Origin: Convolutriloba macropyga
Taxonomy: Eukaryota
Reading direction: 5' to 3'
DNA: 64,000 nucleotides
Assembly (NCBI RefSeq): GCF_964194025.1
Contig: NC_134477.1
Span: forward strand, 56,482,001-56,546,000
Part shown: positions 1 to 31,317 of the stretch, one piece after another
How the letters are laid out: each line of letters starts with the position of its first letter
Position numbering within the stretch: the stretch's first letter is position 1
Made by a program: the position numbers and the translations under genes
Notes under the pieces: generated by a model
The model's input: only the letters and a program-made list of their open reading frames with translations
Databases searched by the model: none
Told to the model about the DNA's origin: nothing

Positions 1-3000
1 TTTTTGTCTAAATTACTTAGTGTATATTCCTATGTTTTTTTGAATTTCTGTTTAATATATTATAGGTTCATTTCGGTATGCCTTTTATCTGCTTCCCGTT
101 AATTGAACTTTTGCTTATTTCAAGAAGTTCGAAAACTTGCATTTCTCTGACTAATCTCATTCTTCGCCCTAGCCATAGCCATTTGTTTGCTGTAGTATAA
201 TTTTTCCAGGTTTTGTCTTCCGTTTTGTTGACGTGATGCTTATCGTACTGCACCAGGCTGACCCTTTGATTATAAAAATTTACTGATCTCATTTGTTTTG
301 TTTACCTTACTGTCGTCATGTCCATTGTACGGCTCCAGGCTGATCATCAAATTGTCACGAAACAACTGATGAAAAGGGCTTTTTTGTCTAAATTACTTAG
401 TGTATATTCCTATGTTTTTTTGAATTTCTGTTTAATATATTATAGGTTCATTTCGGTATGCCTTTTATCTGCTTCCCGTTAATTGAACTTTTGCTTATTT
501 CAAGAAGTTCGAAAACTTGCATTTCTCTGACTAATCTCATTCTTCGCCCTAGCCATAGCCATTGGTTTGCTTTAGTATAATTTTTCCAGGTTTTGTCTTT
601 CGTTTTGTTGACGTGATGCTCATCGTACTGCCCCAGGCTGACCCTTTGATTATAAAAATTTACTGATCTCAGTTGTTTTGTTTACCTTACTGTCGTCATG
701 TCCATTGTACGGCTCCAGGCTGATCATCAAATTGTCACGAAACAACTGATGAAAAGGGGTTTTTTTGTCTAAATTACTTAGTGTTTATTCCTGTGTTTTT
801 TTGAATTTCTGTTTATTATATTTTAGGTTCATTTCGGTATGACTTTTATCTGCTTCCCGTTTATTGGACTTTTGCGTTTTTCAAGAAGTTCGAAAACTTG
901 CATTTCTCTGACTAATCTCAATCTTCGCCCTAGCCATTGGTTTGCTGTAGTATAATTTTTCCAGGTTTTGTCTTTCGTTTTGTTGACGTGATGCTTATCG
1001 TACTGCCCCAGGCTGGCCCTTTGATTATAAATAGTTGCTGATCTAAGTTGTTTTTTGTTTGCCTCACTGTCGTCATGTCCATTGTGCGGCTCCAGTATGA
1101 TCATCGATTTGTCACGAAAAAACTGATAAAAAGCATTTTTTTCTAAAGTACTTATTATATGTGCTCATTTTTTTGTATTTCTTTTTAAAAACTTTTATGT
1201 TCATTTGGGTATGCCTTTTATCTGCTTCCCGTTAATTGAACTTTTGCTTATTTCAAGAAGTTCGAAAACTTGCATTTCTCTGACTAATCTCATTCTTCGC
1301 CCTAGCCATAGCCATTGGTTTGCTGTAGTATAATTTTTCCAGGTTTTGTCTTCCGTTTTGTTGACGTGATGCTTATCGTACTGCACCAGGCTGACCCTTT
1401 GATTATAAAAATTTACTGATCTCATTTGTTTTGTTTACCTTACTGTCGTCATGTCCATTGTACGGCTCCAGGCTGATCATCAAATTGTCACGAAACAACT
1501 GATGAAAAGGGTTTTTTTGTCTAAATTACTTAGTGTATATTCCTATGTTTTTTTGAATTTCTGTTTAATATATTATAGGTTCATTTCGGTATGCCTTTTA
1601 TCTGCTTCCCGTTAATTGAACTTTTGCTTATTTCAAGAAGTTCGAAAACTTGCATTTCTCTGACTAATCTCATTCTTCGCCCTAGCCATAGCCATTGGTT
1701 TGCTGTAGTATAATTTTTCCAGGTTTTGTCTTTCGTTTTGTTGACGTGATGCTTATCGTACTGCCCCAGGCTGACCCTTTGATTAAAAAAATTTACTGAT
1801 CTCATTTGTTTTGTTTACCTTACTGTCGTCATGTTCATTGTACGGCTCCAGGCTGATCATCAAATTGTCACGAAACAACTGATGAAAAGGGGTTTTTTTG
1901 TCTAAATTACTTAGTGTTTATTCCTGTGTTTTTTTGAATTTCTGTTTAATATATTTTAGGTTCATTTCGGTATGACTTTTATCTGCTTCCCGTTTATTGG
2001 ACTTTTGCGTTTTTCAAGAAGTTCGAAAACTTGCATTTCTCTGACTAATCTCAATCTTCGCCCTAGCCATTGGTTTGCTGTAGTATAATTTTTCCAGGTT
2101 TTGTCTTTCGTTTTGTTGACGTGATGCTTATCGTACTGCCCCAGGCTGACCCTTTGATTATAAATAGTGGCTGATCTAAATTGTTTTTTGTTTGCCTCAC
2201 TGTCGTCATGTCCATTGTGCGGCTCCAGGCTGATCATCGATTTGTCACGAAAAAACTGATAAAAAGCATTTTTTTTCTAAAGTACTTATTATCTGTGCTT
2301 ATTTTTTTGTATTTCTTTTTAATAACTTTTATGTTCATTTCGGTGTGCCTTATATCTGCTCCCCGTTTATTGAACTTTGCGTATTTCAAGAAGTTCGAAA
2401 ACTTGCATTTCTCTGACTAATCTCAATCTTCGCCCTAGCCATTGGTTTGCTGTAGTATAATTTTTCCAGGTTTTGTCTTTCGTTTTGTTGACGTGATGCT
2501 TATCGTACTGCCCCAGGCTGACCCTTTGATTATAAAAATTTACTGATCTCATTTGTTTTGTTTACCTTACTGTCGTCATGTCCATTGTACGGCTCCAGGC
2601 TGATCATCAAATGGTCACGAAACAACTGATGAAAAGGGGTTTTTTGTCTAAATTACTTAGTGTATAATCCTATGTTTTTTTGAATATCTGTTTAATATAT
2701 TATAGGTTCATTTCGGTGTGCCTTATATCTGCTCCCCGTTTATTGAACTTTGCGTATTTCAAGAAGTTCGAAAACTTGCATTTCTCTGACTAATCTCAAT
2801 CTTCGCCCTAGCCATTGGTTTGCTGTAGTATAATTTTTCCAGGTTTTGTCTTTCGTTTTGTTGACGTGATGCTTATCGTACTGCCCCAGGCTGACCCTTT
2901 GATTATAAAAATTTACTGATCTCATTTGTTTTGTTTACCTTACTGTCGTCATGTCCATTGTACGGCTCCAGGCTGATCATCAAATTGTCACGAAACAACT

Positions 3001-6000
3001 GATGAAAAGGGGGTTTTTTGTCTAAATTACTTAGTGTTTATTCCTGTGTTTTTTTGAATTTCTGTTTAATATATTTTAGGTTCATTTCGGTATGCCTTTT
3101 ATCTGCTTCCCGTTAATTCAACTTTTGCTTATTTCAAGAAGTTCGAAAACTTGCATTTCTCTGACTAATCTCATTCTTCGCCCTAGCCATAGCCATTGGT
3201 TTGCTGTAGTATAATTTTTCCAGGTTTTTTCTTTCGTTTTGTTGACGTGATGCTTATCGTACTGCCCCAGGCTGACCCTTTGATTATAAATAATTTGCTG
3301 ATCTAAATTGTTTTCTGTTTGCCTCACTGTCGTCATGTCCATTGTGCGGCTCCAGGCTGATCATCGATTTGTCACGAAAAAACTGATGAAAAGGGGTTTT
3401 TTGTCTAAATTACTTAGTGTATATTCCTATGTTTTTTTTGAATTTCTGTTTAATATATTTTAGGTTCATTTCGGTATGCCTTTTATCTGCTTCCCGTTAA
3501 TTGAACTTTTGCTTATTTCAAGAAGTTCGAAAACTTGCATTTCTCTGACTAATCTCATTCTTCGCCCTAGCCATAGCCATTGGTTTGCTGTAGTATAATT
3601 TTTCCAGGTTTTGTCTTCCGTTTTGTTGACGTGATGCTTATCGTACTGCACCAGGCTGCCCCTTTGATTATAAAAATTTACTGATCTCATTTGTTTTGTT
3701 CACCTTACTGTCGTCATGTCCATTGTACGGCTCCAGGCTGATCATCAAATTGTCACGAAACAACTGATGAAAAGGGGTTTTTTGTCTAAATTACTTAGTG
3801 TATATTCCTATGTTTTTTTTGAATTTCTGTTTAATATATTTTAGGTTCATTTCGGTATGCCTTTTATCTGCTTCCCGTTAATTGAACTTTTGCTTATTTC
3901 AAGAAGTTCGAAAACTTGCATTTCTCTGACTAATCTCATTCTTCGCCCTAGCCATAGCCATTGGTTTGCTGTAGTATAATTTTTCCAGGTTTTGTCTTCC
4001 GTTTTGTTGACGTGATGCTTATCGTACTGCACCAGGCTGACCCTTTGATTATAAAAATTTACTGATCTCATTTGTTTTGTTTACCTTACTGTCGTCATGT
4101 CCATTGTACGGCTCCAGGCTGATCATCAAATTGTCACGAAACAACTGATGAAAAGGGGTTTTTTTGTCTAAATTACTTAGTGTTTATTCCTGTGTTTTTT
4201 TGAATTTCTGTTTAATATATTTTAGGTTCATTTCGGTATGACTTTTATCTGTTTCCCGTTTATTGGACTTTTGCGTTTTTCAAGAAGTTCGAAAACTTGC
4301 ATTTCTCTGACTAATCTCAATCTTCGCCCTAGCCATTGGTTTGCTGTAGTATAATTTTTCCAGGTTTTGTCTTTCGTTTTGTTGACGTGATGCTTATCGT
4401 ACTGCCCCGGGCTGACCCTTTGATTATAAATAGTTGCTGATCTAAATTGTTTTTTGTTTGCCTCACTGTCGTCATGTCCATTGTGCGGCTCCAGGCTGAT
4501 CATCGATTTGTCACGAAAAAACTGATAAAAAGCATTTTTTTTTAAAGTACTTTTTATATGTGCTTATTTTTTTGTATTTCTTTTTAATAACTTTTATGTT
4601 CATTTCGGTGTGCCTTATATTTGCTCCCCGTTTATTGAACTTTGCGTATTTCAAGAAGTTCGAAAACTTGCATTTCTCTGACTAATCTCATTCTTCGCCC
4701 TAGCCATAGCCATTGGTTTGCTGTAGTATAATTTTTCCAGGTTTTCTCTTTCGTTTTGTTGATGTGATGCTTATCGTACTGCCCCAGGCTGACCCTTTGA
4801 TTATAAAAATTTACTGATCTCATTTGTTTTGTTTACCTTACTGTCGTCATGTCCATTGTACGGCTCCAGGCTGATCATCAAATTGTCACGAAACAACTGA
4901 TGAAAAAGGTTTTTTGTCTAAATTACTTAGTGTTTATTCCTGTGTTTTTTTGAATTTCTGTTTAATATATTTTAGGTTCATTTCGGTATAACTTTTATCT
5001 GCTTGCCGTTTATTGGACTTTTGCGTTTTTCAAGAAGTTCGAAAACTTGCATTTCTCTGACTAATCTCAATCTTCGCCCTAGCCATTGGTTTGCTGTAGT
5101 ATAATTTTTCCAGGTTTTGTCTTTCGTTTTGTTGACGTGATGCTTATCGTACTGCCCCAGGCTGACCCTTTGATTATAAAAATTTACCGATCTCATTTGT
5201 TTTGTTTACCTTACTGTCCTCATGTCCATTGTACGGCTCCAGGCTGATCATCAAATTGTCACGAAACAACTGATGAAAAGGGGTTTTTTTGTCTAAATTA
5301 CTTAGTGTTTATTCCTGTGTTTTTTTGAATTTCTGTTTAATATATTTTAGGTTCATTTCGGTATGACTTTTATCTGTTTCCCGTTTATTGGACTTTTGCG
5401 TTTTTCAAGAAGTTCGAAAACTTGCATTTCTCTGACTAATCTCAATCTTCGCCCTAGCCATTGGTTTGCTGTAGTATAATTTTTCCAGGTTTTGTCTTTC
5501 GTTTTGTTGACGTGATGCTTATCGTACTGCCCCGGGCTGACCCTTTGATTATAAATAGTTGCTGATCTAAATTGTTTTTTGTTTGCCTCACTGTCGTCAT
5601 GTCCATTGTGCGGCTCCAGGCTGATCATCGATTTGTCACGAAAAAACTGATAAAAAGCATTTTTTTTTAAAGTACTTTTTATATGTGCTTATTTTTTTGT
5701 ATTTCTTTTTAATAACTTTTATGTTCATTTCGGTGTGCCTTATATTTGCTCCCCGTTTATTGAACTTTGCGTATTTCAAGAAGTTCGAAAACTTGCATTT
5801 CTCTGACTAATCTCATTCTTCGCCCTAGCCATAGCCATTGGTTTGCTGTAGTATAATTTTTCCAGGTTTTCTCTTTCGTTTTGTTGATGTGATGCTTATC
5901 GTACTGCCCCAGGCTGACCCTTTGATTATAAAAATTTACTGATCTCATTTGTTTTGTTTACCTTACTGTCGTCATGTCCATTGTACGGCTCCAGGCTGAT

Positions 6001-9000
6001 CATCAAATTGTCACGAAACAACTGATGAAAAAGGTTTTTTGTCTAAATTACTTAGTGTTTATTCCTGTGTTTTTTTGAATTTCTGTTTAATATATTTTAG
6101 GTTCATTTCGGTATAACTTTTATCTGCTTGCCGTTTATTGGACTTTTGCGTTTTTCAAGAAGTTCGAAAACTTGCATTTCTCTGACTAATCTCAATCTTC
6201 GCCCTAGCCATTGGTTTGCTGTAGTATAATTTTTCCAGGTTTTGTCTTTCGTTTTGTTGACGTGATGCTTATCGTACTGCCCCAGGCTGACCCTTTGATT
6301 ATAAAAATTTACCGATCTCATTTGTTTTGTTTACCTTACTGTCCTCATGTCCATTGTACGGCTCCAGGCTGATCATCAAATTGTCACGAAACAACTGATG
6401 AAAAAGGGTTTTTTGTCTAATTTACTTAGTGTTTATTCCTGTGTTTTTTTGAATTTCTGTTTAATAATTTTTAGGTTCATTTCGGTATGACTTTTATCTG
6501 CTTGCCGTTTATTGGACTTTTGCGTTTTTCAAGAAGTTCGAAAACTTGCATTTCTCTGACTAATCTCATTCTTCGCCCTAGCCATAGCCATTGGTTTGCT
6601 GTAGTATAATTTTTCCAGGTTTTGTCTTTCGTTTTGTTGACGTGATGCTTATCGTACTGCCCCAGGCCGACCCTTTGATTATAAAAATTTACTGATCTCA
6701 TTTGTTTTGTTTACCTTACTGTCGTCATGTCCATTGTACGGCTCCAGGCTGATCATCAAATTGTCACGAAACAACTGATGAAAAGGGGTTTTTTGTCTAA
6801 ATTACTTAGTGTTTATTCCTGTGTTTTTTTGAATTTCTGTTTAACATATTTTAGGTTCATTTCGGTATGCCTTTTATCTGCTTCCCGTTAATTGAACTTT
6901 TGCTTATTTCAAGAAGTTCGAAAACTTGCATTTCTCTGACTAATCTCATTCTTCGCCCTAGCCATAGCCATTGATTTGCTGTAGTATAATTTTTCCAGGT
7001 TTTGTCTTTCGTTTTTTTGACGTGATGCTTATCGTACTGCCCCAGGCTGACCCTTTGATTATAAAAATTTGCTGATCTCATTTGTTTTGTTTACCTTACT
7101 GTCGTCATATCCATTGTACGGCTCCAGGCTGATCATCAAATTGTCACGAAGCAACTGATGAAAAGGGGTTTTTTGTCTAAATTAGTTAGTGTTTTTTCCT
7201 GTGTTTTTTTTTGAATTTCTGTTTAATATATTTTAGGTTCATTTCGGTATGCTTTTTATCTGCTTCCCGTTTATTGGACTTTTGCGTTTTTCCAGAAGTT
7301 CGAAAACTTGCATTTCTCTGACTAATCTCAATCTTCGCCCTAGCCATTGGTTTGCTGTAGTATAATTTTTCCAGGTTTTGTCTTTCGTTTTGTTGACGTG
7401 ATGCTTATCGTACTGCCCCAGGCTGACTCTTTGATTATAAAAATTTACTGATCTCATTTGCTTTGTTTACCTTACTGTCGTCATGTTCATTGTACGGCTC
7501 CAGGCTGATCATCAAATTGTCACGAAGCAACTGATGAAAAAAGGTTTTTGTCTAAATTACTTAGTGTTTATTCCTGTGTTTTTTTGAATTTCTGTTTAAT
7601 ATATTTTAGGTTCATTTCGGCATGCTTTTTATCTGCTTCCCGTTTATTGGACTTTTGCGTTTTTCAAGAAGTTCGAAAACTTGCATTTCTCTGACTAATC
7701 TCAATCTTCGCCCTAGCCATTGGTTTGCTGTAGTATATTTTTTCCAGGTTTTGTCTTTCGTTTTGTTGACGTGATGCTTATCGTACTGCCCCAGGCTGAC
7801 CCTTTGATTATAAAAATTTACTGATCTCATTTGTTTTGTTTACCTTACTGTCGTCATGTCCATTGTACGGCTCCAAGCTGATCATCAAATTGTCACGAAA
7901 CAACTGATGAAAAGGGGTTTTTTGTCTAAATTACTTAGTGTTTATTCCTGTGTTTTTTTGAATTTCTGTTTAACATATTTTAGGTTCATTTCGGTATGCC
8001 TTTTATCTGCTTCCCGTTAATTGAACTTTTGCTTATTTCAAGAAGTTCGAAAACTTGCATTTCTCTGACTAATCTCATTCTTCGCCCTAGCCATAGCCAT
8101 TGATTTGCTGTAGTATAATTTTTCCAGGTTTTGTCTTTCGTTTTGTTGACGTGATGCTTATCGTACTGCCCCAGGCTGACCCTTTGATTATAAAAATTTA
8201 CTGATCTCATTTGTTTTGTTTACCTTACTGTCGTCATGTCCATTGTACGGCTCCAGGCTGATCATCAAATTGTCACGAAGCAACCGATGAAAAGGGGTTT
8301 TTAGTCTAAATTACTTAGTGTTTATTCCTGTGTTTTTTTTTGAATTTCTGTTTAATATATTTTAGGTTCATTTCGGTATGCTTTTTATCTGCTTCCCGTT
8401 TATTGGACTTTTGCGTTTTTCAAGAAGTTCGAAAACTTGCATTTCTCTGACTAATCTCAATCTTCGCCCTAGCCATTGGTTTGCTGTAGTATAATTTTTC
8501 CAGGTTTTGTCTTTCGTTTTGTTGACGTGATGCTTATCGTACTGCCCCAGGCTGACCCTTTGATTATAAAAATTTACTGATCTCATTTGTTTTGTTTACC
8601 TTACTGTCGTCATGTCAATTGTACGGCTCCAGGCTGATCATCAAATTGTCACGAAACAACTGATGAAAAGGGATTTTTTTGTCTAAATTACTTAGTGTTT
8701 ATTCCTGTGTTTTTTTGAATTTCTGTTTAATATATTTTAGGTTCATTTCGGTATGCCTTTTATCTGCTTCCCGTTAATTGAACTTTTGCTTATTTCAAGG
8801 AGTTCGAAAATTGGCATTTCTCTGACTAATCTCATTCTTCGCCCTAGCCATAGCCATTGGTTTGCTGTAGTATAATTTTTCCAGGTTTTGTCTTTCGTTT
8901 TGTTGACGTGATGCTTATCGTACTGCCCCAGGCTGACCCTTTGATTATAAAAATTTACTGATCTCATTTGTTTTGTTTACCTTACTGTCGTCATGTCCAT

Positions 9001-12000
9001 TGTACGGCTCCAGGCTGATCATCAAATTGTCACGAAGCAACCGATGAAAAGGGGTTTTTAGTCTAAATTACTTAGTGTTTATTCCTGTGTTTTTTTTTCG
9101 AATTTCTGTTTAATATATTTTAGGTTCATTTCGGTATGCTTTTTATCTGCTTCCCGTTTATTGGACTTTTGCGTTTTTCAAGAAGTTCGAAAACTTGCAT
9201 TTCTCTGACTAATCTCAATCTTCGCCCTAGCCATTGGTTTGCTGTAGTATAATTTTTCCAGGTTTTGTCTTTCGTTTTGTTGACGTGATGCTTATCGTAC
9301 TGCCCCAGGCTGACTCTTTGATTATAAAAATTTACTGATCTCATTTGCTTTGTTTACCTTACTGTCGTCATGTCCATTGTACGGCTCCAGGCTGATCATC
9401 AAATTGTCACGAAGCAACTGATGAAAAGGGGTTTTTTGTCTAAATTACTTAGTGTTTATTCCTGTGTTTTTTTTAATTTCTGTTTAATATATTTTAGGTT
9501 CATTTCGGTATGCTTTTTATCTGCTTCCCGTTTATTGGACTTTTGCGTTTTTCAAGAAGTTCGAAAACTTGCATTTCTCTGACTAATCTCAATCTTCGCC
9601 CTAGCCATTGGTTTGCTGTAGTATAATTTTTCCAGGTTTTGTCTTTCGTTTTGTTGACGTGATGCTTATCGTACTGCCCCAGACTGACCCTTTGATTATA
9701 AAAATTTACTGATCTCATTTGTTTTGTTTACCTTACTGTCGTCATGTCCATTGTACGGCTCCAAGCTGATCATCAAATTGTCACGAAACAACTGATGAAA
9801 AGGGGTTTTTTGTCTAAATTACTTAGTGTTTATTCCTGTGTTTTTTTGAATTTCTGTTTAACATATTTTAGGTTCATTTCGGTATGCCTTTTATCTGCTT
9901 CCCGTTAATTGAACTTTTGCTTATTTCAAGAAGTTCGAAAACTTGCATTTCTCTGACTAATCTCATTCTTCGCCCTAGCCATAGCCATTGATTTGCTGTA
10001 GTATAATTTTTCCAGGTTTTGTCTTTCGTTTTGTTGACGTGATGCTTATCGTACTGCCCCAGGCTGACCCTTTGATTATAAAAATTTACTGATCTCATTT
10101 GTTTTGTTTACCTTACTGTCGTCATGTCCATTGTACGGCTCCAGGCTGATCATCAAATTGTCACGAAGCAACCGATGAAAAGGGGTTTTTAGTCTAAATT
10201 ACTTAGTGTTTATTCCTGTGTTTTTTTTGAATTTCTGTTTAATATATTTTAGGTTCATTTCGGTATGCTTTTTATCTGCTTCCCGTTTTTTGGACTTTTG
10301 CGTTTTTCCAGAAGTTCGAAAACTTGCATTTCTCTGACTAATCTCAATCTTCGCCCTAGCCATTGGTTTGCTGTAGTATAATTTTTCCAGGTTTTGTCTT
10401 TCGTTTTGTTGACGTGATGCTTATCGTACTGCCCCAGGCTGACTCTTTGATTATAAAAATTTACTGATCTCATTTGCTTTGTTTACCTTACTGTCGTCAT
10501 GTCCATTGTACGGCTCCAGGCTGATCATCAAATTGTCACGAAGCAACTGATGAAAAGGGGTTTTTAGTCTAAATTACTTAGTGTTTATTCCTGTGTTTTT
10601 TTTTGAATTTCTGTTTAATATATTTTAGGTTCATTTCGGTATGCCTTTTATCTGCTTCCCGTTAATTGAACTTTTGCTTATTTCAAGAAGTTCGAAAACT
10701 TGCATTTCTCTGACTAATCTCATTCTTCGCCCTAGCCATAGCCATTGGTTTGCTGTAGTATAATTTTTCCAGGTTTTGTCTTTCGTTTTGTTGACGTGAT
10801 GCTTATCGTACTGCCCCAGGCTGACCCTTTGATTATAAAAATTTACTGATCTCATTTGTTTTGTTTACCTTACTGTCGTCATATCCATTGTACGGCTCCA
10901 GGCTGATCATCAAATTGTCACGAAGCAACTGATGAAAAGGGGTTTTTTGTCTAAATTACTTAGTGTTTATTCCTGTGTTTTTTTTTTGAATTTCTGTTTA
11001 ATATATTTTAGGTTCATTTCGGTATGCTTTTTATCTGCTTCCCGTTTATTGGACTTTTGCGTTTTTCCAGAAGTTCGAAAACTTGCATTTCTCTGACTAA
11101 TCTCAATCTTCGCCCTAGCCATTGGTTTGCTGTAGTATAATTTTTCCAGGTTTTGTCTTTCGTTTTGTTGACGTGATGCTTATCGTACTGCCCCAGGCTG
11201 ACTCTTTGATTATAAAAATTTACTGATCTCATTTGCTTTGTTTACCTTACTGTCGTCATGTCCATTGTACGGCTCCAGGCTGATCATCAAATTGTCACGA
11301 AGCAACTGATGAAAAGGGGTTTTTTGTCTAAATTACTTAGTGTTTATTTCTGTGTTTTTTTTGAATTTCTGTTTAATATATTTTAGGTTCATTTCGGTAT
11401 GCTTTTTATCTGCTTCCCGTTTATTGGACTTTTGCGTTTTTCAAGAAGTTCGAAAACTTGCATTTCTCTGACTAATCTCAATCTTCGCCCTAGCCATTGG
11501 TTTGCTGTAGTATAATTTTTCCAGGTTTTGTCTTTCGTTTTGTTGACGTGATGCTTATCGTACTGCCCCAGGCTGACCCTTTGATTATAAAAATTTACTG
11601 ATCTCATTTGTTTTGTTTACCTTACTGTCGTCATGTCCATTGTACGGCTCCAAGCTGATCATCAAATTGTCACGAAACAACTGATGAAAAGGGTTTTTTG
11701 TCTAAATTACTTAGTGTTTATTCCTGTGTTTTTTTGAATTTCTGTTTAACATATTTTAGGTTCATTTCGGTATGCCTTTTATCTGCTTCCCGTTAATTGA
11801 ACTTTTGCTTATTTCAAGAAGTTCGAAAACTTGCATTTCTCTGACTAATCTCATTCTTCGCCCTAGCCATAGCCATTGATTTGCTGTAGTATAATTTTTC
11901 CAGGTTTTGTCTTTCGTTTTGTTGACGTGATGCTTATCGTACTGCCCGAGGCTGACCCTTTGATTATAAAAATTTACTGATCTCATTTGTTTTGTTTACC

Positions 12001-18000: not shown

Positions 18001-21000
18001 CCTTTGATTATAGAAAATTTACTGATCTCAATCGTTTTTTGGTTGCCTTACTGGCGTCATGTCCATTGTACCGCTCCAGGCTGATCATTAAATTGTCACG
18101 AAACAACTGATGAAAAGGGGTTTTTTGTCTAAATTACTTAGTGTTTATTCCTGTGTTTTTTTGAATTTCTGTTTAACATATTTTAGGTTCATTTCGGTAT
18201 GCCTTTTATCTGCTTCCCGTTAATTGAACTTTTGCTTATTTCAAGAAGTTCGAAAACTTGCATTTCTCTGACTGATCTCATTCTTCGCCCTAGCCTTAGT
18301 GAGTGGTTTGCTGTAGTATAATTTTTCCAGGTTTTGTCTTGTTTTGTTGACGTGATGAGTTTCGTACTGCCCCCAGGCTGACCCTTTTATTATAGAAAAT
18401 TTACTGATCTCAATTGTTTTTGCTTACCTTACTGGCGTCATGTCCATTGTACCGCTCCAGGCTGATCATCAAACTGTCACGAAACAACTGATAAAAAGAG
18501 TTTTTTTGTCTAAATTACTTGTGTTTATGCCTGTTTTTTTGAATTTCTGTTTAATATCTTTTTGGTTCATTTTGGTATGCCTTTTATCTGCTTCCCGTTA
18601 ATTGAACTTTTGCTAATTTCAAAAGTTCGAAAACTTGCATTTCTCTGACTAATCTCATTCTTCGCCCTAGCCATAGTGATTGGTTTGCTGTAGTATAATT
18701 TTTCCAGGTTTTGACTTTCGTTTTGTTGGCGTAAGGCTTATCGTACTGCCCCAGGCTGACTCTTGGATTAGAAAAAATTTATTGATCTTAATTGATTTTT
18801 GGTTGCCTTACTGTCGTCATGTCCATTGTACGGCTCCAGGCTGATCATCGGTTTGTCACGAAGAAACTGATAAAAAGGATTTTTTTCTCTGAATTACTTA
18901 GTATTTGTGCTTATATTTTTTTCTGTTTGATAACTTTGAGGTTCATTTCGGTGTACCTTTTATCTGCTCCCCGTTTATTGAACTTTTGCTTATTTCAAGA
19001 AGTTCGAAAACTTGCATTTCTCTGACTAATCTCAGTCTGCGCCCTAGCCATGGTGATTGGTTTGCTGTAGTATAATTTTTCCAGGTTTTGTTTTTCGCTT
19101 TGTTGACGTGATGCTTATCGTACTGCACCCGGCTGACCATTTGATTAAAAAATTTTCTGATCTCAATTGTTTTCGCTTACCTTACTGGCGTCTTGTCACT
19201 TTTACGGCTCCAGACTGATCATCAAATTGTCACGAAACAACTGATAAAAAGGATTTTTTTGTCTAAATTACTTAGTACTCATGCCTGTTTTTTGAATTTC
19301 TGTTTAATAACTTGTAGGTTCATTTCGGTATGCCTTTTATCTGCTTCCCGTTAATTGCACTTTTGCTTATTTCATGAAGTTGGAACTTTTGCATTTCTCT
19401 GACTAATCTCATTCTTCGCCCTAGCCTTAGTGAGTGGTTTGCTGTAGTATAATTTTTCCAGATTTTGTCTTGTTTTGTTGACGTGATGAGTTTCGTACTG
19501 CCCCTAGGCTGACCCTTTGATTATAGAAAATTTACTGATCTCAATTGTTTTTGCTTACCTTGCTGGCGTCATGTCCATTGTACCGCTCCAGGCTGATCAT
19601 CTGATTGTCAGGAAACGCCTGATAAAAAAGCTTTGTCTTAATTATTTGGCATTTGTGTCTACTTGTTTTGTACAACTGTTTCATAGAGTTTAGGTTTGTT
19701 TCGGTATGACTTTTATCTTCTCCCCGTTGATTGAGCTTTAGCTTATTTCAAGAAGTTCGAAATTTGCATTTCTCTGACTAATCTCATTCTTCGCCCTAGC
19801 CATATTGATTGGTTTGCTGTATTTTAATTTTCCCATGTTTTGTCTTGTTTTGTTGCGTTATCTGAACCTTTGAATATAAAAAAATTACCAATCTCAATTT
19901 TCTTTGTTCACCTTACTTTCGTCATGTCCATTGTACCGCTCCAGGCTGATCATCTGATTGTCAGGAAACACCTGATAAAAAGCTTTGTCTAAATTACTTG
20001 GTATTCGTGCCAACTTGTTTTGTACAACTGGTTCTTAAATTTTAGGCTTTTTCGGTATGCCTTTTATCTGCTCCCCGTTAATTGAACCTTTGCTTATTTC
20101 AAGAAGTTCGAAAACTTGCATTTCTCTAACTAATCTCATTCTTCGCCCTAGCCATAGTGAGTGGTTTGCTGTTGTATAATTTTTCCAGGTTTTGTCTTTC
20201 ATTTTGATGACGTGATGCCTATCGTTCTGTTCTGCCCCAGACTGAGCCTTTGATTATAAAAAAAATACTGATCTCAATTGTTTTTGTTTACCTTACTGTC
20301 GTCATGTCCATTGTACTGCTCAAGGTTGATCATATGATTGTCAGGAAACACCTGATAAAAAAGCTTTGTCTAAATTACTTGGTATTTGTGCCAACTTGTT
20401 TTGTACAACTGGTTCATAAATTTTAGGCTTTTTCGGTATGCCTTTTATCTGCTCGCCGTTAATTGAACTTTTGCTTATTTCAAGAAGTTCGAAAAATTAC
20501 ATTTCTCTGACTAATATCATTCTTCGCCCTAGCCATAGTGATTGGTTTGCTGTAGTATAATTTTTCCAGGTTTTGACTTTCGTTTTGTTGGAGTAATGCT
20601 CATCGTACTGCCCCAGGCTGACAAAAATTTACTGATCTCAGTTGTTTGTTTACCTTACTGTCGTCATGTCCATTGTACGGCTCCAGGCTGATCATCGAAA
20701 TGTCACGAGACAACTGATAAATCAGGATTTTGTCTAAGATATTTAGTATTTGTGCCTGCTCTTCTTATTTACTTAATAATTTTTAGGTTTATGTCGGTAT
20801 GCCTTTTATCTGCTCCCCGTTAATTGAGCTTTTGCTTATTTCAAGAAAATCGAGAACTTGCATTTCTCTGACTAATCTCATTCTTCGCCCTAGCTATTGT
20901 GATTGGTTTGCAGTAGTATAATATTTCCAGGTTTTGTCTTTCCTTTGGTGACGTGATGCTTATGGTACTGTCCCAGGCTGACCGGTTGATTATAAAAAAA

Positions 21001-24000
21001 TTTAATGATCTCAATTGTTTTTTTAACTTACTGTCGTCATGCTCATTGTACGGCTCCAGGCTGATCATCAAATTGTCACGAAACAACTGATAAAACAGGA
21101 TGATTTGTCTACATCACTTAGTATTTGCGCCTGTTTTTTTGTATTTCTGTTTAATAATTTTTAGGTTCATTTCGGTATGCCTTTTATCTGCTCCGCGTGA
21201 ATTGAACTTTTGCTTATTTCAAGAAAATTGAAAAAATTGCCTTTCTCAGACTTATCTCATTCTTCGCCCTAGCCGTAGTGATTGATTTGCTGTAGTATAA
21301 TTTTTCCAGGTTTTGTCTTTCGTTTTGTTGACGTGATGCTTATCGTACTGCCCCAGGCTGACCCTTTGATTATAAAAATTTACTGATCTCAGTTGTTTGT
21401 TTACCTTACTGTCGTCATGTCCATTGTACGGCTCCAGGCTGATCATCAAATTGTCACGAAACAACTGATAAAAAGGATTTGTTTGTCTAAATTACTTGGT
21501 GTTTGTGTCTTCTTTTTGTATTTCTGTTTAACTTTTAGGTTCATTTCCGTATGCCTTTTATCTGCTTCCCGTTAATTGAACTTTTGCTTATTCGTACCTA
21601 TGTTTTGTAATTCTGTTTCGTAAATTTTAGTTTTGTTTGGGTTTGCCTGTCTTTGCTCCCCTTTAATTGAACTTCTGCTTTTTTCAAGAAGTTCGATAAA
21701 TTGCATTTGTCTGACTAATCTCATTCTTCGCCCTAGCTATAGTGATTGGTTTGCTGTAGTATAATGTTTCCAGGTTTTTGTCTTTCCTTTTGTTGACGTG
21801 ATGTTTATGGTACTGCCCCAGGCTGACCCTTTGTTTGTAAAAAAATTTACTGATCTCAATTGTTTTTTTAACTTACTGTCGTCATGCCCATTGTACGGCT
21901 CCAGGCTGATCATCGAATTGTCACGAAACAACTGATAAAAAAGGATTTTTGGTCTAAATTACTTAGTATTTATGCCTGTTTTGTATTTCTGTAATAACTT
22001 GTATGTTCATTTCGGTATGTATTTCTTTTATCTGCTTCCCGTTAATTGAACTTTTGCTTACTCGCGCCTATTTTTTTATTTCTGTTTCATAAACTTTAGG
22101 TTTTTTGGGTATGCCTTTCATCTGCTCCCCGTTAATTGAACTTTTGCTTTTTTCAAGAAGTTCGAAAGCTTGTATGTCTCTGACTAATCTCATTCTTGGC
22201 CCTAGCCATAGTGATTGGTTTGCTGTAGTATTTGTTTCTCAGGTGTTGTCTCGTTTTGTTGAAATGATGCTTTTTGTACTGCCCCAGGCTGACACCTTGA
22301 TTATAAAGATATTACTGATCTCAATTAGTTTTGTTTGCCTTACTGTAATCCTTTTCATTGTACCGCTCCAGGCTGATCATCGGATTGTCACGAAACAACT
22401 GATAAAAGGGGATTGTTCTGTCTAAATTACTTAGTATTCGTGCCTATTTTTTCTATTCCTGTTTCATAAATTTTAGGTTTGTTTGGATTTGCCTTTCATC
22501 TGCTCCGTTAATTGGACTTTTGCTTATTTCAAGAAAATCGAGAATTTGCATTTCTCTGACTAATCTCATTCTTCGCCCTAGCTATAGTGATTGGTTTGCA
22601 GTAGTATAGTATTTCCAGGTTTTGTCTTTCCTTTTGTTGACGTGATGCTTGTGGTACTGCCCCAGGCTGACCCTTCGATTGTAAAAAAATTTACTGATCT
22701 TAATTGTTTTTTTAACTTACTGTCGTCATGCCCATTCTACGGCTCCAGGCTGATCATCAAATTGTCACGAAACAACTGATAAAAAGGATTTGGTTGTCTA
22801 AATTACTTGGTGTTTGTGTCTTTTTTTGTATTTCTGTTTAACTTTTAGGTTCATTTCCGTATGCCTTTTATCTGCTTCCCGTTAATTGAACTTTTGCTTA
22901 TTCGTACCTATTTTTTGTAATTCTGTTTCGTAAATTTTAGTTTTGTTTGGGTTTGCCTGTCTTCTGCTCCCCTTTAATTGAACTTCTGCTTTTTTCAAGA
23001 AGTTCGATAAATTGCATTTGTCTGACTAATCTCATTCTTTGCCCTAGCTATAGTGATTGGTTTGCTGTAGTATAATGTTTCCAGGTTTTGTCTTTCCTTT
23101 TGTTGACGTGATGCTTATGGTACTGCCCCAGTCTGACCCTTTGTTTGTAAAAAAATTTACTGATCTCAATTGTTTTTTTAACTTACTGTCGTCATGCCCA
23201 TTGTACGGCTCCAGGCTGATCATCAAATTGTCACGAAACAACTGATAAAAAGGATTTGTTTGTCTAAATTACTTGGTGTTTGTGTCTTTTTTTTGTATTT
23301 CTGTGTTTAACTTTTAGGTTCATTTCCGTATGCCTTTTATCTGCTTCCCGTTAATTGAACTTTTGCTTATTCGTACCTATTTTTTGTAATTCTGTTTCGT
23401 AAATTTTAGTTTTGTTTGGGTTTGCCTGTCTTCTGCTCCCCTTTAATTGAACTTCTGCTTTTTTCAAGAAGTTCGATAAATTGCATTTGTCTGACTAATC
23501 TCTTTCTTCGCCCTAGCTATAGTGATTGGTTTGCTGTAGTATAATGTTTCCAGGTTTTGTCTTTCCTTTTGTTGACGTGATGCTTATGGTACTGCCCCAG
23601 GCTGACCCTTTGTTTGTAAAAAATTTTACTGATCTCAATTGTTTTTTTAACTTACTGTCGTCATGCCCATTGTACGGCTCCAGGCTGATCATCGAATTGT
23701 CACGAAACAACTGATAAAAAAGGATTTTTTGTCTAAATTACTTAGTATTTATGCCTGTTTTGTATTCTGTAATAACTTGTATGTTCATTTCGGTATGTAT
23801 TTCTTTTATCTGCTTCCCGTTAATTGAACTTTTGCTTACTCGCGCCTATTTTTTTATTTCTGTTTCATAAAGTTTAGGTTTTTTGGGTATGCCTTTCATC
23901 TGCTCCCCGTTAATTGAACTTTTGCTTTTTTCAAGAAGTTTGAAAGCTTGCATGTCTCTGACTAATCTCATTCTTGGCCCTAGCCATAGTGATTGGTTTG

Positions 24001-26340
24001 CTGTAGTATTTATTTCTCAGGTGTTGTCTCGTTTTGTTGAAATGATGCTTTTTGTACTGCCCCAGGCTGACACCTTGATTTTAAAGATATTACTGATCTC
24101 AATTAGTTTTGTTTGCCTTACTGTAATCCTTTTCATTGTACCGCTCCAGGCTGCTCATTGGATTGTCACGAAACAACTGATCAAAGGGATTGTTCTGTCT
24201 TAATTACTTAGTATTCGTGCCTATTTTTTCTATTCCTGTTTCATAAATTTTAGGTTTGTTTGGATTTGCCTTTCATCTGCTCCCCGTTAATTAAACTTTT
24301 GCTTATTGTTTTGTAGTTTTTAGGATTGTTTCGGTGTGCTTTTTGTCTGCTCCTCGTTAATTGAACTTTTGCCTATTTCAAGAAGTTCGAAGACTAATTT
24401 CATTCTTTGCCCTGGCCTCAGTGACTTGTTTGCTGTAGTATGATTTTTCAGGTTTTGTCTCTCGTTTTGTGGACGTGATGCTTATCGTACTGCCCCAAGC
24501 TGACCCTTTGTTTATATAAAATTTAACTATCTTGGTGGTTTTTTGTTCCTTTTAATGTCATGTCTATTGTACCGCTGCAGCTTGATCACCTTATTGTCGC
24601 AAAGCAACTGATAAAGGTTTTTTGTCTAAAATACTTGGTTTTTGTGCCTACTTGTTTTGTACTGTGTCTTAACACTTAAGGGTTTGTATTGCTCTGTCTG
24701 ATCTCCGTTGATTGAATTTTGACTTAGTTTGAATTTGACTTAGATTCAATTAGTTTGAAACTTGTGTTTCCTGACTATTCGAATTGGACTCCCTGATCTT
24801 AGTGACTGGTTTCCTGTAGTATAATTTTCTCAGGTCTTATCTCACCTTTCGTTGACGTGATGCTTAGCGTACTGCCCCTGGCTACCCCTTGTTGATAAGA
24901 AATGTAATGATCTTGGTGTTTCTTTTGTTCTTTTTACTGTCATTTCTATTTTAAACTGCAGATTGATCACCCGATTGTCGCCAAAAAAACTGATGAGAAA
25001 GGTTTATTGGTGTAAATTACTTGGTTTTTGTGCCTACTTGTTTTGTACTGCTGTTTCTGACTATTTTCAGGTTTGTATTCGTATGTCTTGTATGATCTCC
25101 GTTAATTGAAGTTTTGTTTTTTTTCAAGAAATTCGAAAAATTTCCTGACTATTCTAATTGGTTCACTGATCTTAGTGATTTGTTTGTTGTAGTATAGTTT
25201 TCTCCGGGTTTTGTTTTTCGTTTTTCTTGACTTACTGCTTATCGTACTGCTACAGGCTGACCCTTTGATTATAAAAAATTTACTGATCTCATTTGTTTTT
25301 ATTTATCTTACTGTCCTCATGCCCATTGTACGGCTCCAGGCTGATCATCAAATTGTCACGAAACAACTGATAAAAAGGAGTTGTTTGTCTAAATAGTCAT
25401 TGGTTTGCTATAGAATAATTTTTCCAGGTTGTGTCTTTCGTTTTGTTGACGTGATACTTATCGAACTGCAACAGGCTGACCCTTTGATTATAAAAAATTT
25501 ACTGATCTCAATTGTTTGTTGTTTCCTTTACTTTTACTGTCGTCATGTCCATTGTACCGCTCCAGGCTGATCGCCTGACTGTCACGAAAAAACTGATGAA
25601 AAAGGTTTTGTCTGAATTACTTTGTATTCATGCCTACTTTTCTCGTACACTTTTTTCATAAATTTTAGGTATGTTTTGGTATGCCTATCATCTGCTCCCC
25701 GTTAATTGAATTTTTGCCATTTTTACGTTTTTCAAGAGGTTCGAAAACGCGATCTTTTCCGACTAATCACATTTTTGCCCTGCTCATAGTGATTGGTTTG
25801 CTGTAGTATAGTTTTCTCAGGTTCCGTCTCTCGTTTTGCTGACGTGATGTTTATCGTACTGCACCAGGCTGGCCCTTTATCAAAAATTTACTGATCCAAC
25901 TTTGTTGTTTCCCTTACTGTCGTCATGTCCATTGTACCGCCCCAGGTTGGTCAGCTAATTGACACGAAAAAACTGATAAAAAGTTTTTTTCTAAATTACG
26001 TTGTATTGATGCCTACTTTTTTCGTAGAACTGTTTCATAAATTTTAGGTTTGTTTCGGTATGCCTTTTATCTGCTCCCCGTTAATTGAACTTTTGCTTTT
26101 TTAAAGAAGTTCGAAAACTTGCATGTCTGTCTAATCTCATTCTTCGCCCTAGCCATAGTGATTGGTTTGCTGTAGTATATTTTTTCCAGGTTTTGTCTTT
26201 CGTTTTGTTGACGTGATGCTTATCGTACTGCCCCAGGCTGACCCTTTGATTATAAAAAATTTACTGATCGCAATTGTATTTTGTTTACCTTACTGTCGTC
26301 ATGTCCATTGTACCGCTTCAGGATGGTCAGTTGATTGACA
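1..26340. repeat. Tandem satellite array, ~374-380-bp monomer, roughly 65-70 copies in the window, truncated by the window start
   Basis: TTTTTGTCTAAATTACTTAG recurs at 1 and 381 and onward. The ORF track repeats every ~375-380 bp. There are two main monomer types, with AGCCATAGCCATTG or AGCCATTG (6-bp indel) plus linked SNPs. Copies are near-identical to ~16.7 kb and increasingly diverged to ~26.3 kb. Confidence 0.98.
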
Positions 26341-26449
26341 TTAAGTGTAAAATGTAGTGATTTGCTGCATATCTAATTTTGCTCTTATGTAATCAATTGG
26401 GTGAATTAATTCCTCAATATTAGCGAAAATCGGTCTGTTTGACATTCGG

Positions 26450-27345
26450 TGAAGCACTAAGGAGACCCAGCCTTTGCTATTTAGCCTTTGCTGTTTAGAG
26501 AAATTCTAGCCTTTCCTGTTTATCAGCTCTCCTGCATTTAAGTTCTTCAAGTAGATTTCTATAGTCGCTGTTTTTTTTTTAATTTTCACGCATACGCTTT
26601 AGGGAAAGCATTTTGGTTGATGAAGGTGTACGCTGTTGTGGTGTGTCCTTGGTTTTGCTTTTTTGTAGATTCTCCGGATAACTGAACTTTTGATCAATTT
26701 TTCAGCAACAAGTTGCAATTCATTTATATCTTGCTTAGAATTCAATTCTAGATATCGGGTGATGCGATCTGACTTGATATGCATAAGTGGTGCTGAATTG
26801 TTACTAGCGACTTTTAATTGTTTTGCTTGAGCCTCCTCTTTCAATGGTTTATCGTATTTGCTCTATTGCTGTAGAGTAAAAAGCGCTTTTCCGTGATTTG
26901 GATTCCTTTAATTCCCCAGCAAACCTTCCTGCTCCAGATTCTTTCCTTCTGGTCAAAAAAGACAAACTATCAACTATGCAATTCTGGTGGTGGCTTGAAT
27001 GACGATCCTCTTCATAACGGATGGCACGTTTTGAAATCGCGTGGTTCAATGTTGACATTCTGTACAGTTTGGATAAGGTCAATAACGTCTGAGCGGCAGG
27101 TTCCATTTGAACTAAACGTTGGATTACGAATAATTAAACTATCTTTCAAATGATGTCTTTCCGGTTGATTAGCTTTAATCTTCACCTGTGCCACCTTAGA
27201 TTCCAGTTCGGCAATTCGTGTTTTTTTGCTAAATTTTCTTTGATTAGGGTTTTCAAATTTTCCTTAGCTGATTCATCAAGACTCTCACTTTCATGCTATG
27301 TTTTTATCAGATCGACCATGCCTCGCTGGCTCATCTCTATTTAAT
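26450..27345 (-). pseudogene. Degenerate coding fragment, possibly from a non-LTR retrotransposon, interrupting the satellite edge
   Basis: Non-satellite block with successive minus-strand K/E/R-rich ORF pieces (26849-27106, 26599-26844) broken by stops. No diagnostic motif was recognised. Confidence 0.25.
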
Positions 27346-27409
27346 AAGTTTATCAATTTATTTACTAAGTTTATCACAATAATTAGGATAAATTTTATCC
27401 GCTAATTTT

Positions 27410-27940
27410 AGGACTTGATTTATCTCTCTAATCTCATTCTGCTCCCAGATTGTTTTGACTGGCTGGCTCTACTACAATTTTGTGAGCGGCTGTCTCGCTT
27501 TTCGCCGACAGGATGTCCCTTATACCGTTCCAAACTGACACTTTAATAATGACAAACTAAATGGTGATAGTTTTTGATTTCCTTCACTGAGGTGATGAAA
27601 TGCCTGTCTGAACCGGAGTTTGGCAAAATTACTGCTAGTTTTTTTGGTTTCCATTACTTGCCTGATTTGTATTGCTGTAGTCTGATGACCTGACTATCAC
27701 AAAATTACTGGCGGTACTCGACTGTTTTAGCTATCGAGAATACGTGTCCTTCTTGCTCATTCGTCTTTTTCTTGTAAATATATCGTGGTTCCGTGTAAAT
27801 TCATTTTCCGGGAAAATTTGAAGGTGATTTGACTGTATCAGTCTATATTTTCCCCTTGGCTGAATTGTTTTGTTGACATTACTATGATAAGCAAGTTTTT
27901 GTCTCGCGTATTGTTGACGTGATTGTACCGCTTCAGTATT
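27410..27940. repeat. Highly decayed relics of the same satellite monomer
   Basis: CTAATCTCATTCT...TGTCTCGCTTTTCGCCGAC...AAACTGACACTTTAAT (~27428-27550) and TTGTTGACGTGATTGTACCGCTTCAG (~27911-27936) align by eye with monomer motifs in the same order. Confidence 0.55.
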
Positions 27941-28296
27941 TTTTACGCTAGAATTTGGTTTTTATTATCATTTAGTTTGTATAACATTTTGATCACTTCT
28001 TTGGGAGCTGGTTTCACGCGTTTACCATGTCGAGCCAGAGTTTTGAAGAGTCACGTAATCTTGCTTAAAATGCTCAATTTGCACGTTTTATAGTGACTAG
28101 TGTGTTATGTAAGTTATGTATATAGCCAATTCTGGCCTTTGGACTTCTGGCACTGCCGAGTTTCGGCATTTTATAACGTGCACGTGCGTTTTTTAAGCCT
28201 GTTCTTCTTCGAAACTGCTGAAGAAAGCAAGCCTGACGCCAGTAGCGATCACTACTTTGTCTATCCTTCCTTCTTTGTCGTATCATGTTTTTTGTT

Positions 28297-29172
28297 AATA
28301 GCCACACAGCGATAGCTGGACTATTATTGGCCTTCTCTTGGTTTTTTTACAATTCAATGAATTTGAATTGTATTGGGGCGCTGTCTTTTTTTAAGATCTG
28401 TTCACACATTTTCATGATTTTTAAAGTCAAATTGGAGTAGTGATTTTAGTCACCACGAAACAGGAAATGGAGCGAAAAAGCGAGTGGTTTTGCGGCGTGA
28501 AATTTTTTCACTCTAATTTTAAAGTAGAATGAGAAAACGGTGTTCGAACAAAAATTCGCTTTCTCGCTAGTGGTGTTTTGTTCACATGCGGCAATTTCGC
28601 TTTGATTTTCTGTTTTTTCGATTTTTTGGATCGGATTTTTTTCTAAATGGTTTTCCCGATCCATTCATTGTCCGTTCTAGGTCTAATTTTCTGTTTAGTC
28701 AATGAAAATTCTTTGAGTTGTACGTCAGGACTTGTCCTGCCATGTTTTTTATTTCGTCGTCGCGATTTTTGTTACGACCATATGACGTCACAACCTCTTC
28801 AAATCTGCGTTTTGTTCATTCGTTCATGCAATTTCAACTGAAGTGCGTGTGTGACGTCATTTTTCGCTCTTAGTGGAGCGAGTTTGTTTTTTTTGTTCAT
28901 TCGCGTGATTAAATTTTCAGTCACACTTTGGGATTGACTTTTATTTACTTTAATTCAAAGAGATAAGGTCAAATGAGTAAGTCACTCTAAATGAAGGTTA
29001 ATTGAGAGCAGCTAATAGAGGCAGCAAAAACTTATACAGATTTTCAATCAAAATATACCATCAGCCTTCAATGAAAAGACAATTTTTTTTGGTCTGTCTG
29101 TTTTTACTGTTTTTTTGAGACTGCAGATCTACGAAGCTATTACGGCTATTTTCTGGCAATCTGACAGCTATG
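28297..29172 (+). mobile_element. Non-autonomous Helentron/DINE-1-like (HINE) element
   Basis: 5' AATAGCC, 3' GGCTATT (29144-29150), then an imperfect hairpin CTGGCA-ATC-TGACAG, then CTATG and a T-run. The internal core (TTACAAT...GATCTGTTCAC...AAGTCAAA) is shared with copies near 31590, 46160, 49460 and 53780. Confidence 0.6.
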
Positions 29173-29588
29173 TTTCCCATTATTTTAAGTTTCAATTGTT
29201 TGGTTTACTTGTTTGGTTTCATGGCATCAAAAGTTACACCTCATTTCCCTTTTTTACATGACTTTAAAAAAAAAACATAACATTACAAAGTGATTCGGAA
29301 TCAACAAAACAGGGCACTACACAAATTAATGGAGAAGTTAATACTGGGCATTAACAAGTAGTTTGATAGCCCGATGGAATCAGGTCGCAGAGCAGATCTC
29401 TAGGGAATTTAATAGTCTTAGTAAACACTTCACCGAAGTTGTTCAGGACACAATTCAACTGGGTGAATAGCAATTTTTGGGAGTCTTAGACCCCCGAACC
29501 CATTTCAATGCCTCCTACCCCCCCCCCCCCGCGATGAACAAATGTTTATCAACTGGGAAATATCTCTTCATAAGCGGTTTATTTATAG

Positions 29589-30080
29589 GAAATTGCGACA
29601 CATGAAAGCGTCGAGAAGGCAGAAATATCTCAGAAACAACCTCTGAACTTAGACGATTGTTTGAAACTTTTGACAAAAGACCAAATTATCACAGATTTCA
29701 GCCCATGCCCGAAGTGCCAAACTACAAAAATTGCTCTAAGTCATCATATTTGGAGATCACCGGCCCATTTAATTGTTCACCTGAAGCGTTACGAACAGCC
29801 AAGCGGAACTGGTCTGAATGGTCGCTGGATAAAAAGTCACAAACGAGTGTCGTTTCCAATTGAAGATTTAAATCTATTGCCTTTCGTGTCAAAAGGATCC
29901 CATATCATGAATAAACAACTAGCGAGAGTTTATTCCGGTGTTGAACCCTCAGAAATTGGCAAGTTTTTGGCTTCAGCGGAACAGGAGCCAGAGCTGACCT
30001 CATCCGAATGTTGTTCCCAGGAAACTAATTTCAGTTCGGAGGTCGATGATTACTTCAAGTACAGATTGTTCAGTGTCTCG
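29589..30080 (+). CDS. USP32: Penultimate coding exon of a USP32-like ubiquitin-specific protease
   Basis: Acceptor TATAG before 29589 and donor GTAAG at 30081, phase 0/0. It translates EIATHESVEKAEISQKQPLNLDDCLKLLT...CPKC...IWRSPAHLIVHLKRY...NGRWIKSHKRVSFP...YRLFSVS, matching the USP32-type segments HESVE..PINLDSCL and LWRLPPILIIHLKRF..NGRWIKSQK.V.FP. Confidence 0.9.
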
Positions 30081-30803
30081 GTAAGTTAAGCACACGCACT
30101 CACGCACACAGAAACTTTAGTAGAAATAGAGCTTTTGTGCTGTGCTTATCTGTGATCTTTTTACATTGTATTATGTAACGTGTTGCCTACTACCACTTAA
30201 TTTGCAATGGGGTGGGGGTTCAGAATGGGAATAGGGGGCACACAAATTGTTTACCCCCTAGTTTTCCATTACAAGTTTTTTTTTCAATATCACGAATGAC
30301 AAATAAGAAATTCGAAAGGGAAACTGGACTGTAGCTCACGGAAGAATGTCTTTAACAACAATAGAAAGGAATTTGAACAGATTCTGAGTTAAAGATACAA
30401 CTCCTTCGAAAATTATTAGCGAATTTTGCAGAAAAGTATTCAGTTTTTTTAAATGCTATCCGTCTAAAGACACAGTGCTGTCACTTTTTATGAGGAAAGC
30501 TATTAAGACTAATTTGTTTTTAACTTTTTTTCTTGTGGTCTTGTTTCTTCGACTCAAAATTTTTCTCATCGGACTGCTAGTGTGGAGCAATTTTCAATTT
30601 TGTTGGCTCCAATATTTGAGATATTTTTTGTCGTACCATTTGTTTTGGAAAGGTTTTGGTGATTTGTTTTATTGCGTTATTTGTTGTTTTAAGCAGTTGT
30701 CACCCAAGAGAACTGTCAACGGTTGTTTTATGGCTTTTGAAGTTTGATGTTACGCTTTTTTGAGGATTTGTATCTAGCTTTGTTTTTTGTGTTTTCATTT
30801 TTT

Positions 30804-31317
30804 ATAGCTGCGAAGCTGTAAGCTGAGCGTAGCTATATTGCGGTGCTCTTGGTTTTTTTTTGTTTCGTCGTCTGACGCTCTTTTTTCGTTTTACATTTGT
30901 TCACACAGCAAAGCTGAAAAAGTCAAATTTTCTGAATGACTTCTTCCTCTCACTAACGGCGTTTGCGCGCGTGACGTCATTTCTCACTCTCTTTAGCAAA
31001 AGTTTTTTGCGTGATTAGATTTTGATCACAAGTGACTTACCTCACTCAATAAAATGACTTTTGCACTTTAAAACTTAAGTTTAATTTGAATTTGTTTAAG
31101 GTCAAAGGAACTCATATGTGCAGTAAAAGTCCTTAATAAGAGGCTTCTGCGGAATGAATTTTAACAAGCTTTATTAGTTTATCGCTAAATTTTTTTTACC
31201 TAGTTTTGTGAGCGGCGTCGATTTTTTTTTCAATTTAGATCAGTATCTGTTTCTATCTCTATTATATGGCACGCAGGTCTATTCTTTCGCAGCTATTCCG
31301 GCAATCTGCCGGCTATG
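30804..31317 (+). mobile_element. HINE/DINE-1-like element, best-preserved copy, in the last USP32 intron
   Basis: Perfect 11-bp subterminal inverted repeat ATAGCTGCGAA (30804) / TTCGCAGCTAT (31286). A 3' hairpin CCGGCA-ATC-TGCCGG is followed by CTATG. There is a short 5' inverted repeat TATAGCT..AGCTATA, T-rich flanks and no TSD. Confidence 0.75.

Follow-up and report, generated by a model that had tools for sequence, protein, structure and literature searches.

In the animal Convolutriloba macropyga, the gene for the deubiquitinase USP32 very probably houses, within a single one of its introns, an 83-kb satellite array that is read through on its T-rich strand, is spliced out of the transcript, has grown in place and is tolerated by its host. 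The window, that is, the whole 64,000-nucleotide stretch of DNA that was analysed (G000:C10:56482001-56546000, + strand), holds the 3′ part of this array together with the last two coding exons of the gene, referred to here as exons A and B; it belongs to contig C10, which measures 62.8 Mb in an assembly of 1.18 Gb and 4,694 contigs. A sequence-only reading of the window had proposed that the satellite fills a giant intron of a USP32-like gene, and this proposal was supported: the intron can now be delimited as C10:56419304-56511588 (the latter being window position 29588), a length of 92,285 bp, of which the array takes up 83.2 kb (90%), with unique sequence of 5.8 kb ahead of it and of 3.3 kb behind it. 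The exons of the gene follow one another in the expected order, the splice junctions are in place and the gene looks intact.

The junction across the array was found in run X5, a data set of 2016 from a separate study, carrying the same species label, obtained from another individual and labelled ‘DNA?’. Since X5 covers exons only (a depth of 333 over the exons and of about 0 over the introns) and contains a GT..AG joint, it is a transcriptome. Its contig record 28 (1,191 nt) follows the window over 29589-30079 and then over 32606-32865, the joint at 30079/32606 (cut +1) having GT..AG borders, and it carries, ahead of 29589, an additional 440 letters which fit nothing in window positions 27001-29588. 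The last 30 of these letters have a single match in the genome, at C10:56419274-56419303 (+), and 0 in the window. Position C10:56419303 ends a 468-nt open frame (L064:1063-1530), and GTGAGT comes next. The exon defined in this way, which we call the donor exon, encodes SYPF..., CWNCPWFNVCRGC and IEWEPTIIHLRFNFAAEN, with the motifs CPW..C.GC and IEWEP..HLR, which are conserved features of USP32 that precede the HESVE segment in every relative compared (they answer to the USP32 pattern CPW..C.GC ... IDW.P..HLRY, found within the UCH insert immediately ahead of HESVE), and the HLR-to-HESVE spacing over the junction equals that of the bird protein. It is from the 30-letter match, the GTGAGT and the conserved USP32 frame taken together that the length and the satellite content of the intron follow, and the junction from 29589 to an exon beyond the array, which the sequence-only reading had named as the thing to look for, is thereby at hand. 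The donor exon was traced solely via the loose end of contig record 28; whole-genome protein searches (with P0011 and P0005) passed over it, its sequence being too diverged. The other measurable spacings between exon matches in the gene are about 2.4-8 kb, apart from one of 13.7 kb in a stretch that was read in part; without the array, the intron would be about 9 kb long, like its neighbours, and unremarkable. Since the exons flanking the array are joined precisely in the mRNA, RNA polymerase II presumably must read the whole intron, and with it the array, whose T-rich strand would then be the one copied into RNA.

The assignment of the gene as a USP32 orthologue is supported by sequence comparison, because its best full-length relatives are USP32 proteins and because the EF-hand, the Cys and His boxes and the CaaX box are all present. 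Each exon was used separately as a query, rather than as part of a joined spliced protein. In an exhaustive HMMER search, exon A alone matches long proteins at residues ~1215-1407. Three such relatives were checked (P0007, P0009 and P0012); they come from a bird, a spider and a planthopper, bear the name USP32 at NCBI, and each has the USP32_N, EF-hand, DUSP and UCH domains. A whole-genome search with the spider USP32 gave collinear matches on the + strand of C10 (Table 1), and tblastn with more relatives placed matches on the same strand at 56378873, 56380061, 56387764, 56388431, 56402980, 56407945 and 56410769 (the last being weak), followed by exons A and B. The match that corresponds to the N-terminal EF-hand pair of USP32 (C10:56380061-56380183, +) has 58-69% identity to this region in five of the USP32 proteins compared and includes a DSNGDGTIDFNE loop, while the Cys box, NIGNTCFMNS, lies at C10:56402980-56403129. 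Intact in the gene are the Cys box, the QHDAQE box, the EF-hand loop, the His box, the Asp region and the CaaX box. The architecture of USP32, a lipid-anchored protein with an EF-hand, DUSP and UBL domains and a split UCH domain, is thus matched in its EF-hand, Cys box, insert segment, His box and CaaX box; identity in the exons compared is only 40-47%, the value for exon A being that to USP32 proteins at residues ~1214-1420. The DUSP region gave weak tblastn matches only, and a profile search of the genome for USP32_N (PF25265) came back blank, as it did in all control genomes. A second USP32 on contig C7 was considered and rejected, the C7 locus being USP4/11/15-like, with 99 bits to USP15 over 55 residues. 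That locus (G000:C7:26016271-26082994, − strand) is a multi-exon USP gene of at least 67 kb, probably an orthologue from the USP15/USP4/USP11 subfamily.

The array as a whole occupies C10:56425142-56508330 (its right end being at about window position 26330), or about 83.2 kb, of which about 57 kb extend to the left of the window start. Within the window, Tandem Repeats Finder (TRF) reported a 380-bp period over 1-21592 (57.3 copies, 91% matches) and, following them, variant units of 467-469 bp as far as 24307, and blastn with one monomer as query traced progressively more diverged copies to 26329, on the + strand throughout, which bears out the satellite of at least 26 kb that had been claimed from the window alone. 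At the other end, the first 258-bp unit begins at C10:56425142 (L011:3142) and is preceded by T-rich unique sequence. Units of 258 bp fill C10:56425142-56432000 and C10:56442001-56452000, and a 17-nt core motif is spaced at 256-258 bp throughout C10:56432101-56446195. Unit matches are present with a more irregular spacing in C10:56453738-56459583, and they occur about every 380 bp, or multiples thereof, in C10:56461206-56481916, where C10:56462001-56472000 again proved to be 380-bp array (period 373, 92% matches). From 5′ to 3′, regular 258-bp units thus give way to mixed units and these to 380-bp units, which are homogeneous in the core, and the array decays at its edges. The two units are related: the 258-bp unit aligns to positions 296-378 and 1-165 of the 380-bp unit, which carries in addition a block including an internal duplicate. 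Among 67 aligned monomers, those of the core have 95-99% identity to the consensus and those nearer the 3′ edge 82-91%, and a weak three-unit periodicity is seen, mean identity being 0.965, 0.959 and 0.959 at lags 3, 6 and 9 versus about 0.951 at other lags. A long head-to-tail array, units of hundreds of bp and concerted homogeneity are marks of satellite DNA, and all three are found here.

Table 1. Features of the USP32 locus; positions are those of the window or, where marked C10, of the contig.
Feature	Position	Strand	Remarks
EF-hand	C10:56380055	+	spider USP32 query residues 229-272
Cys box	C10:56402998	+	spider USP32 query residues 762-806
Catalytic core	C10:56407948	+	spider USP32 query residues 841-968
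Satellite array, 3′ part	window 1-26330	+	380-bp units, homogeneous to ~19000, then diverged units and 467-469-bp variants to the edge
Intron 3′ unique tail, 3.26 kb	window 26331-29588	+	ends in a pyrimidine tract and an AG acceptor at 29587-29588
Penultimate USP32 coding exon (exon A)	window 29589-30080	+	164 codons, phase 0; spider USP32 query residues 1309-1420
Last intron, 2,526 bp	window 30081-32606	+	GT..AG; joint in X5 contig
Last USP32 coding exon (exon B)	window 32607-32903	+	coding to 32900, TGA at 32901-32903; spider USP32 query residues 1521-1602

The array is private to the USP32 locus and has one orientation. All 90 whole-genome matches of the 380-bp unit and all 121 of the 258-bp unit fall inside it, in a search that scores the best candidates only, so that faint relics elsewhere could be missed. 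The 17-nt core motif occurs 224 times in forward and 0 times in reverse orientation in the 1.18-Gb genome (a reversed control gave 0), and among the 100 matches listed of these 224, 99 lie in the array and one, with one mismatch, on contig C8. The repeat does not behave as a satellite family present at many loci or in heterochromatin or centromeres, every whole-genome unit match lying in one array. Inverted repeats are lacking in the 380-bp unit, and the 258-bp unit has two weak AT-rich ones. A Helitron or Helentron origin of the unit was rejected in view of the missing terminal hairpin and of the lack of copies outside the array, and an origin from an RNA gene was rejected as well, no Rfam family being matched across window positions 1-33500.

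How such an array may have come about and persisted can be outlined as follows. A piece of ordinary T-rich intron would have been amplified in place, by unequal exchange or by replication slippage. The 258-bp unit would have come first, and a 380-bp derivative with an internal duplication would then have taken over the 3′ half and may still be under homogenisation; indeed, the layout of the array is most likely of the kind that unequal exchange typically leaves while a newer variant is on the advance. The founder is presumed to have been T-rich because the unique flanks of the intron have the same strand bias (T 0.38-0.39, A 0.25-0.27) as the + strand of the array (T 0.43, A 0.21), and a harmless orientation may simply have been inherited from it. 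The sequence-only reading had taken the T-rich strand to be the sense strand, which agrees with the strand of the gene, also +. RNA polymerase II would pass through the array on that strand, on which cleavage signals, strong donors and motifs for recursive splicing are all but missing, and the intron would be removed in one step. According to this proposal, it is the near absence of poly(A) signals and strong splice donors from the sense strand that lets the gene tolerate the array; transcription would run continuously through an array which arose in situ and is neutral. Elongation rates of 2-4 kb per minute are commonly quoted, and at such rates the array would add roughly 20-40 minutes per transcript.

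Several points weigh against this account. We infer sense transcription of the repeat itself from the joining of its flanking exons. In the X5 contig, 30 of the 440 upstream letters were placed on the genome, and the individual from which X5 was obtained differs from that of the assembly, with 5 differences in 751 nt. Three 10-kb stretches of the array (30 kb) were assigned to the satellite by match coordinates alone. As for the signals on the sense strand, AGGTRAG has 0 occurrences there in all five array blocks, and AATAAA was counted 0, 0, 0, 2 and 0 times in the five blocks on the sense strand and 64, 5, 29, 20 and 19 times on the antisense strand, in copies of a repeat that are not independent of one another; the scarcity on the sense strand matches base composition, from which about 4 would be expected in 21.5 kb. 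Since the asymmetry is a compositional expectation, selection against sense-strand poly(A) signals is not claimed. Finally, the length, continuity and placement of the array rest on one assembly.

This last point leads to another possibility, namely that the satellite is real but was collapsed, expanded or mis-scaffolded, so that the assembly misstates how large it is or that it lies between the donor exon and exon A; the true intron would then be much shorter or much longer. No sequence is harder to assemble than a long homogeneous array, the core monomers are nearly alike, and the genome is in thousands of contigs. However, an assembly artefact of this kind appears improbable. Both edges of the array grade via diverged units into unique sequence, with no abrupt end, and the large-scale structure, from 258-bp through mixed to 380-bp units, is orderly. 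No N was encountered in the ~56 kb of array sequence read, and there is thus no sign of the misassembly at the array edge that had been considered a danger to the original interpretation. Moreover, the satellite has no other home in the genome, and the exons on either side of it are arranged and oriented as the mRNA demands.

It could also be that the array is functional: it might delay transcription, give rise to small or long non-coding RNA, or form a chromatin or enhancer block that regulates USP32. The host gene is conserved and, judging from the contig depth of 333, well expressed, the orientation of the units is strictly uniform, and the weak three-unit periodicity would fit with homogenisation that is continuing. 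Uniform orientation and homogeneity are nevertheless generic to tandem arrays, the units contain no conserved hairpin and, as mentioned, they match nothing in Rfam, so that a function seems even less probable than an error of assembly. That exons A and B could be an orphaned copy, or a short transcription unit of their own, with the satellite being intergenic, as might be thought from the absence of any visible upstream exon within the window, is extremely improbable, since upstream USP32 exons lie in order on the same contig and strand, both exons are single copy in the genome, the transcript contig carries 440 nt ahead of 29589 and these lead into the donor exon on the far side of the array, and the only other locus strongly similar to USP32 proteins, that on C7, is USP4/11/15-like. 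A tolerated array, transcribed and spliced out with its intron, is thus the explanation that we retain.

The two C-terminal USP32 exons had been described from the window as intact and correctly phased from 29589 onwards, and splice sites, open frames and UCH scores all agree with this. The reading frame of exon A, which is preceded by a pyrimidine tract and AG and followed by GTAAGT, opens with EIATHESVE; the exon thus begins at the HESVE segment, and the UCH domain is represented in it by the KRY/KRF box region (Pfam PF00443, 36.7 bits, 4.6e-09, for a cut-off of 23.9). Exon B is preceded by CAG, encodes the His box (GHY), the FND motif and the catalytic Asp region, and matches the end of the same profile (44.9 bits, 1.4e-11, profile positions 205-254 of 254, with the same cut-off). 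It ends in CSLM, which conforms to a predicted CaaX lipidation box; a CaaX box is also terminal in the relatives P0011 and P0017, the relatives’ ends being CCLM and CSIQ, and lipid modification of USP32 is on record (PMC7312083). The local sequence around exon A is confirmed in two samples, given that genomic contigs of runs X1, X3 and X4 span both of its borders (29329-30197). Between the array and exon A, the sequence-only reading had seen unique sequence (26.4-29.5 kb) devoid of any recognisable USP32 exon, and tblastn with 12 relatives likewise found no USP32-like exon in window positions 26330-29588, nor in the unique start of L011; nothing pointed to an exon inside the intron.

Some other features of the region around these exons may be mentioned. 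An element of ~175 bp at 29003-29176, 400 bp upstream of the exon A acceptor, looks like a SINE (short interspersed element) or a MITE (miniature inverted-repeat transposable element) and is present in at least 40 copies with 88-95% identity on many chromosomes. Two blocks, 28200-29200 and 30800-31400, stand out in each of the four runs by a summed contig word depth that climbs to 10^5-10^6, versus ~40-80 in unique flanks; the blocks are joined by many contig joints and are very high-copy interspersed repeats, seemingly of one family. At 27860-28000, in a part of the intron that looks unique, there is a match to an X5 transcript contig whose upstream part lies at C2:68007409, which indicates a related, expressed sequence on another chromosome. 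A second acceptor at 27860 was rejected, since this loose end maps to C2 and no AG precedes 27860, so that the contig comes from a different locus. Just downstream of USP32, at 33350-41530, lie DNA polymerase B-like open reading frames (ORFs) of the protein-primed type, partly duplicated and broken, among them polymerase-like ORFs on the minus strand at 35291-37117 and 37643-38186, in a region that the sequence-only reading labelled a Polinton-like element. Inside it, TRF found a 138-bp unit repeated three times with 98% identity (38748-39163).

Satellite arrays commonly count as heterochromatin from which genes stay away. The well-studied exception is provided by the fertility genes of the Drosophila Y, an extreme case that is tied to spermatogenesis. 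As in these genes (kl-3, kl-5 and others), the USP32 intron is almost wholly satellite, with the repeat on the transcribed strand and the mRNA correctly spliced. In contrast to them, there is in USP32 one 92-kb intron, the repeat is private to its locus and has complex units of 258 and 380 bp, and the host, which lies on a contig of 62.8 Mb, is a deubiquitinase gene of broad conservation. The analogy with the Drosophila Y that had been drawn at the outset therefore holds for a satellite-filled intron that is spliced out, and fails for its size, which is not in the hundreds of kb to megabases, for its units, which are not those of a simple (5-7 nt) satellite, and, so far as one can judge, for its chromosomal setting. 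The Drosophila kl-3 gene extends over 4.3 Mb or more; its introns reach megabase size and consist of simple repeats, (AATAT)n among them, and it is Y-linked, expressed in spermatocytes and in need of a dedicated expression programme and of dedicated RNA-binding proteins (PMC6508621). Tandem units of hundreds of bp in or beside genes, in gene-rich chromatin, have their counterpart in two other systems: the TCAST-like elements of Tribolium are reported to form short arrays of a family dispersed over many sites and associated with genes in euchromatin (PMC3411249), and the Helentron-borne arrays of oysters are reported to be short, dispersed and carried by transposons (PMC7492417). Unlike either of these as reported, the USP32 array is ~83 kb long, occupies a single locus and has neither a Helitron-type hairpin nor dispersed copies.

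As an example of a satellite inside a working gene, the USP32 locus is clear, although it has precedents. What matters is that an ordinary conserved deubiquitinase gene with an 83-kb array in one of its introns still yields a correctly spliced and well-represented mRNA. Given that the repeat is confined to this locus, its probes and reads carry no ambiguity, and the locus is convenient for following the passage of the polymerase, the splicing of a repeat-filled intron, and the length polymorphism and turnover of the array. It is conceivable, although we hold it to be unlikely, that this genome routinely tolerates locus-private satellite arrays of tens of kb in the introns of conserved, well-expressed autosomal genes. 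If this were true, satellite-driven intron gigantism would have a second and independent model, one involving neither Drosophila nor a Y chromosome, which could show whether reading through a homogeneous repeat needs special factors, and whether the orientation of such an array, T-rich and with a sense strand free of poly(A) signals, is selected.

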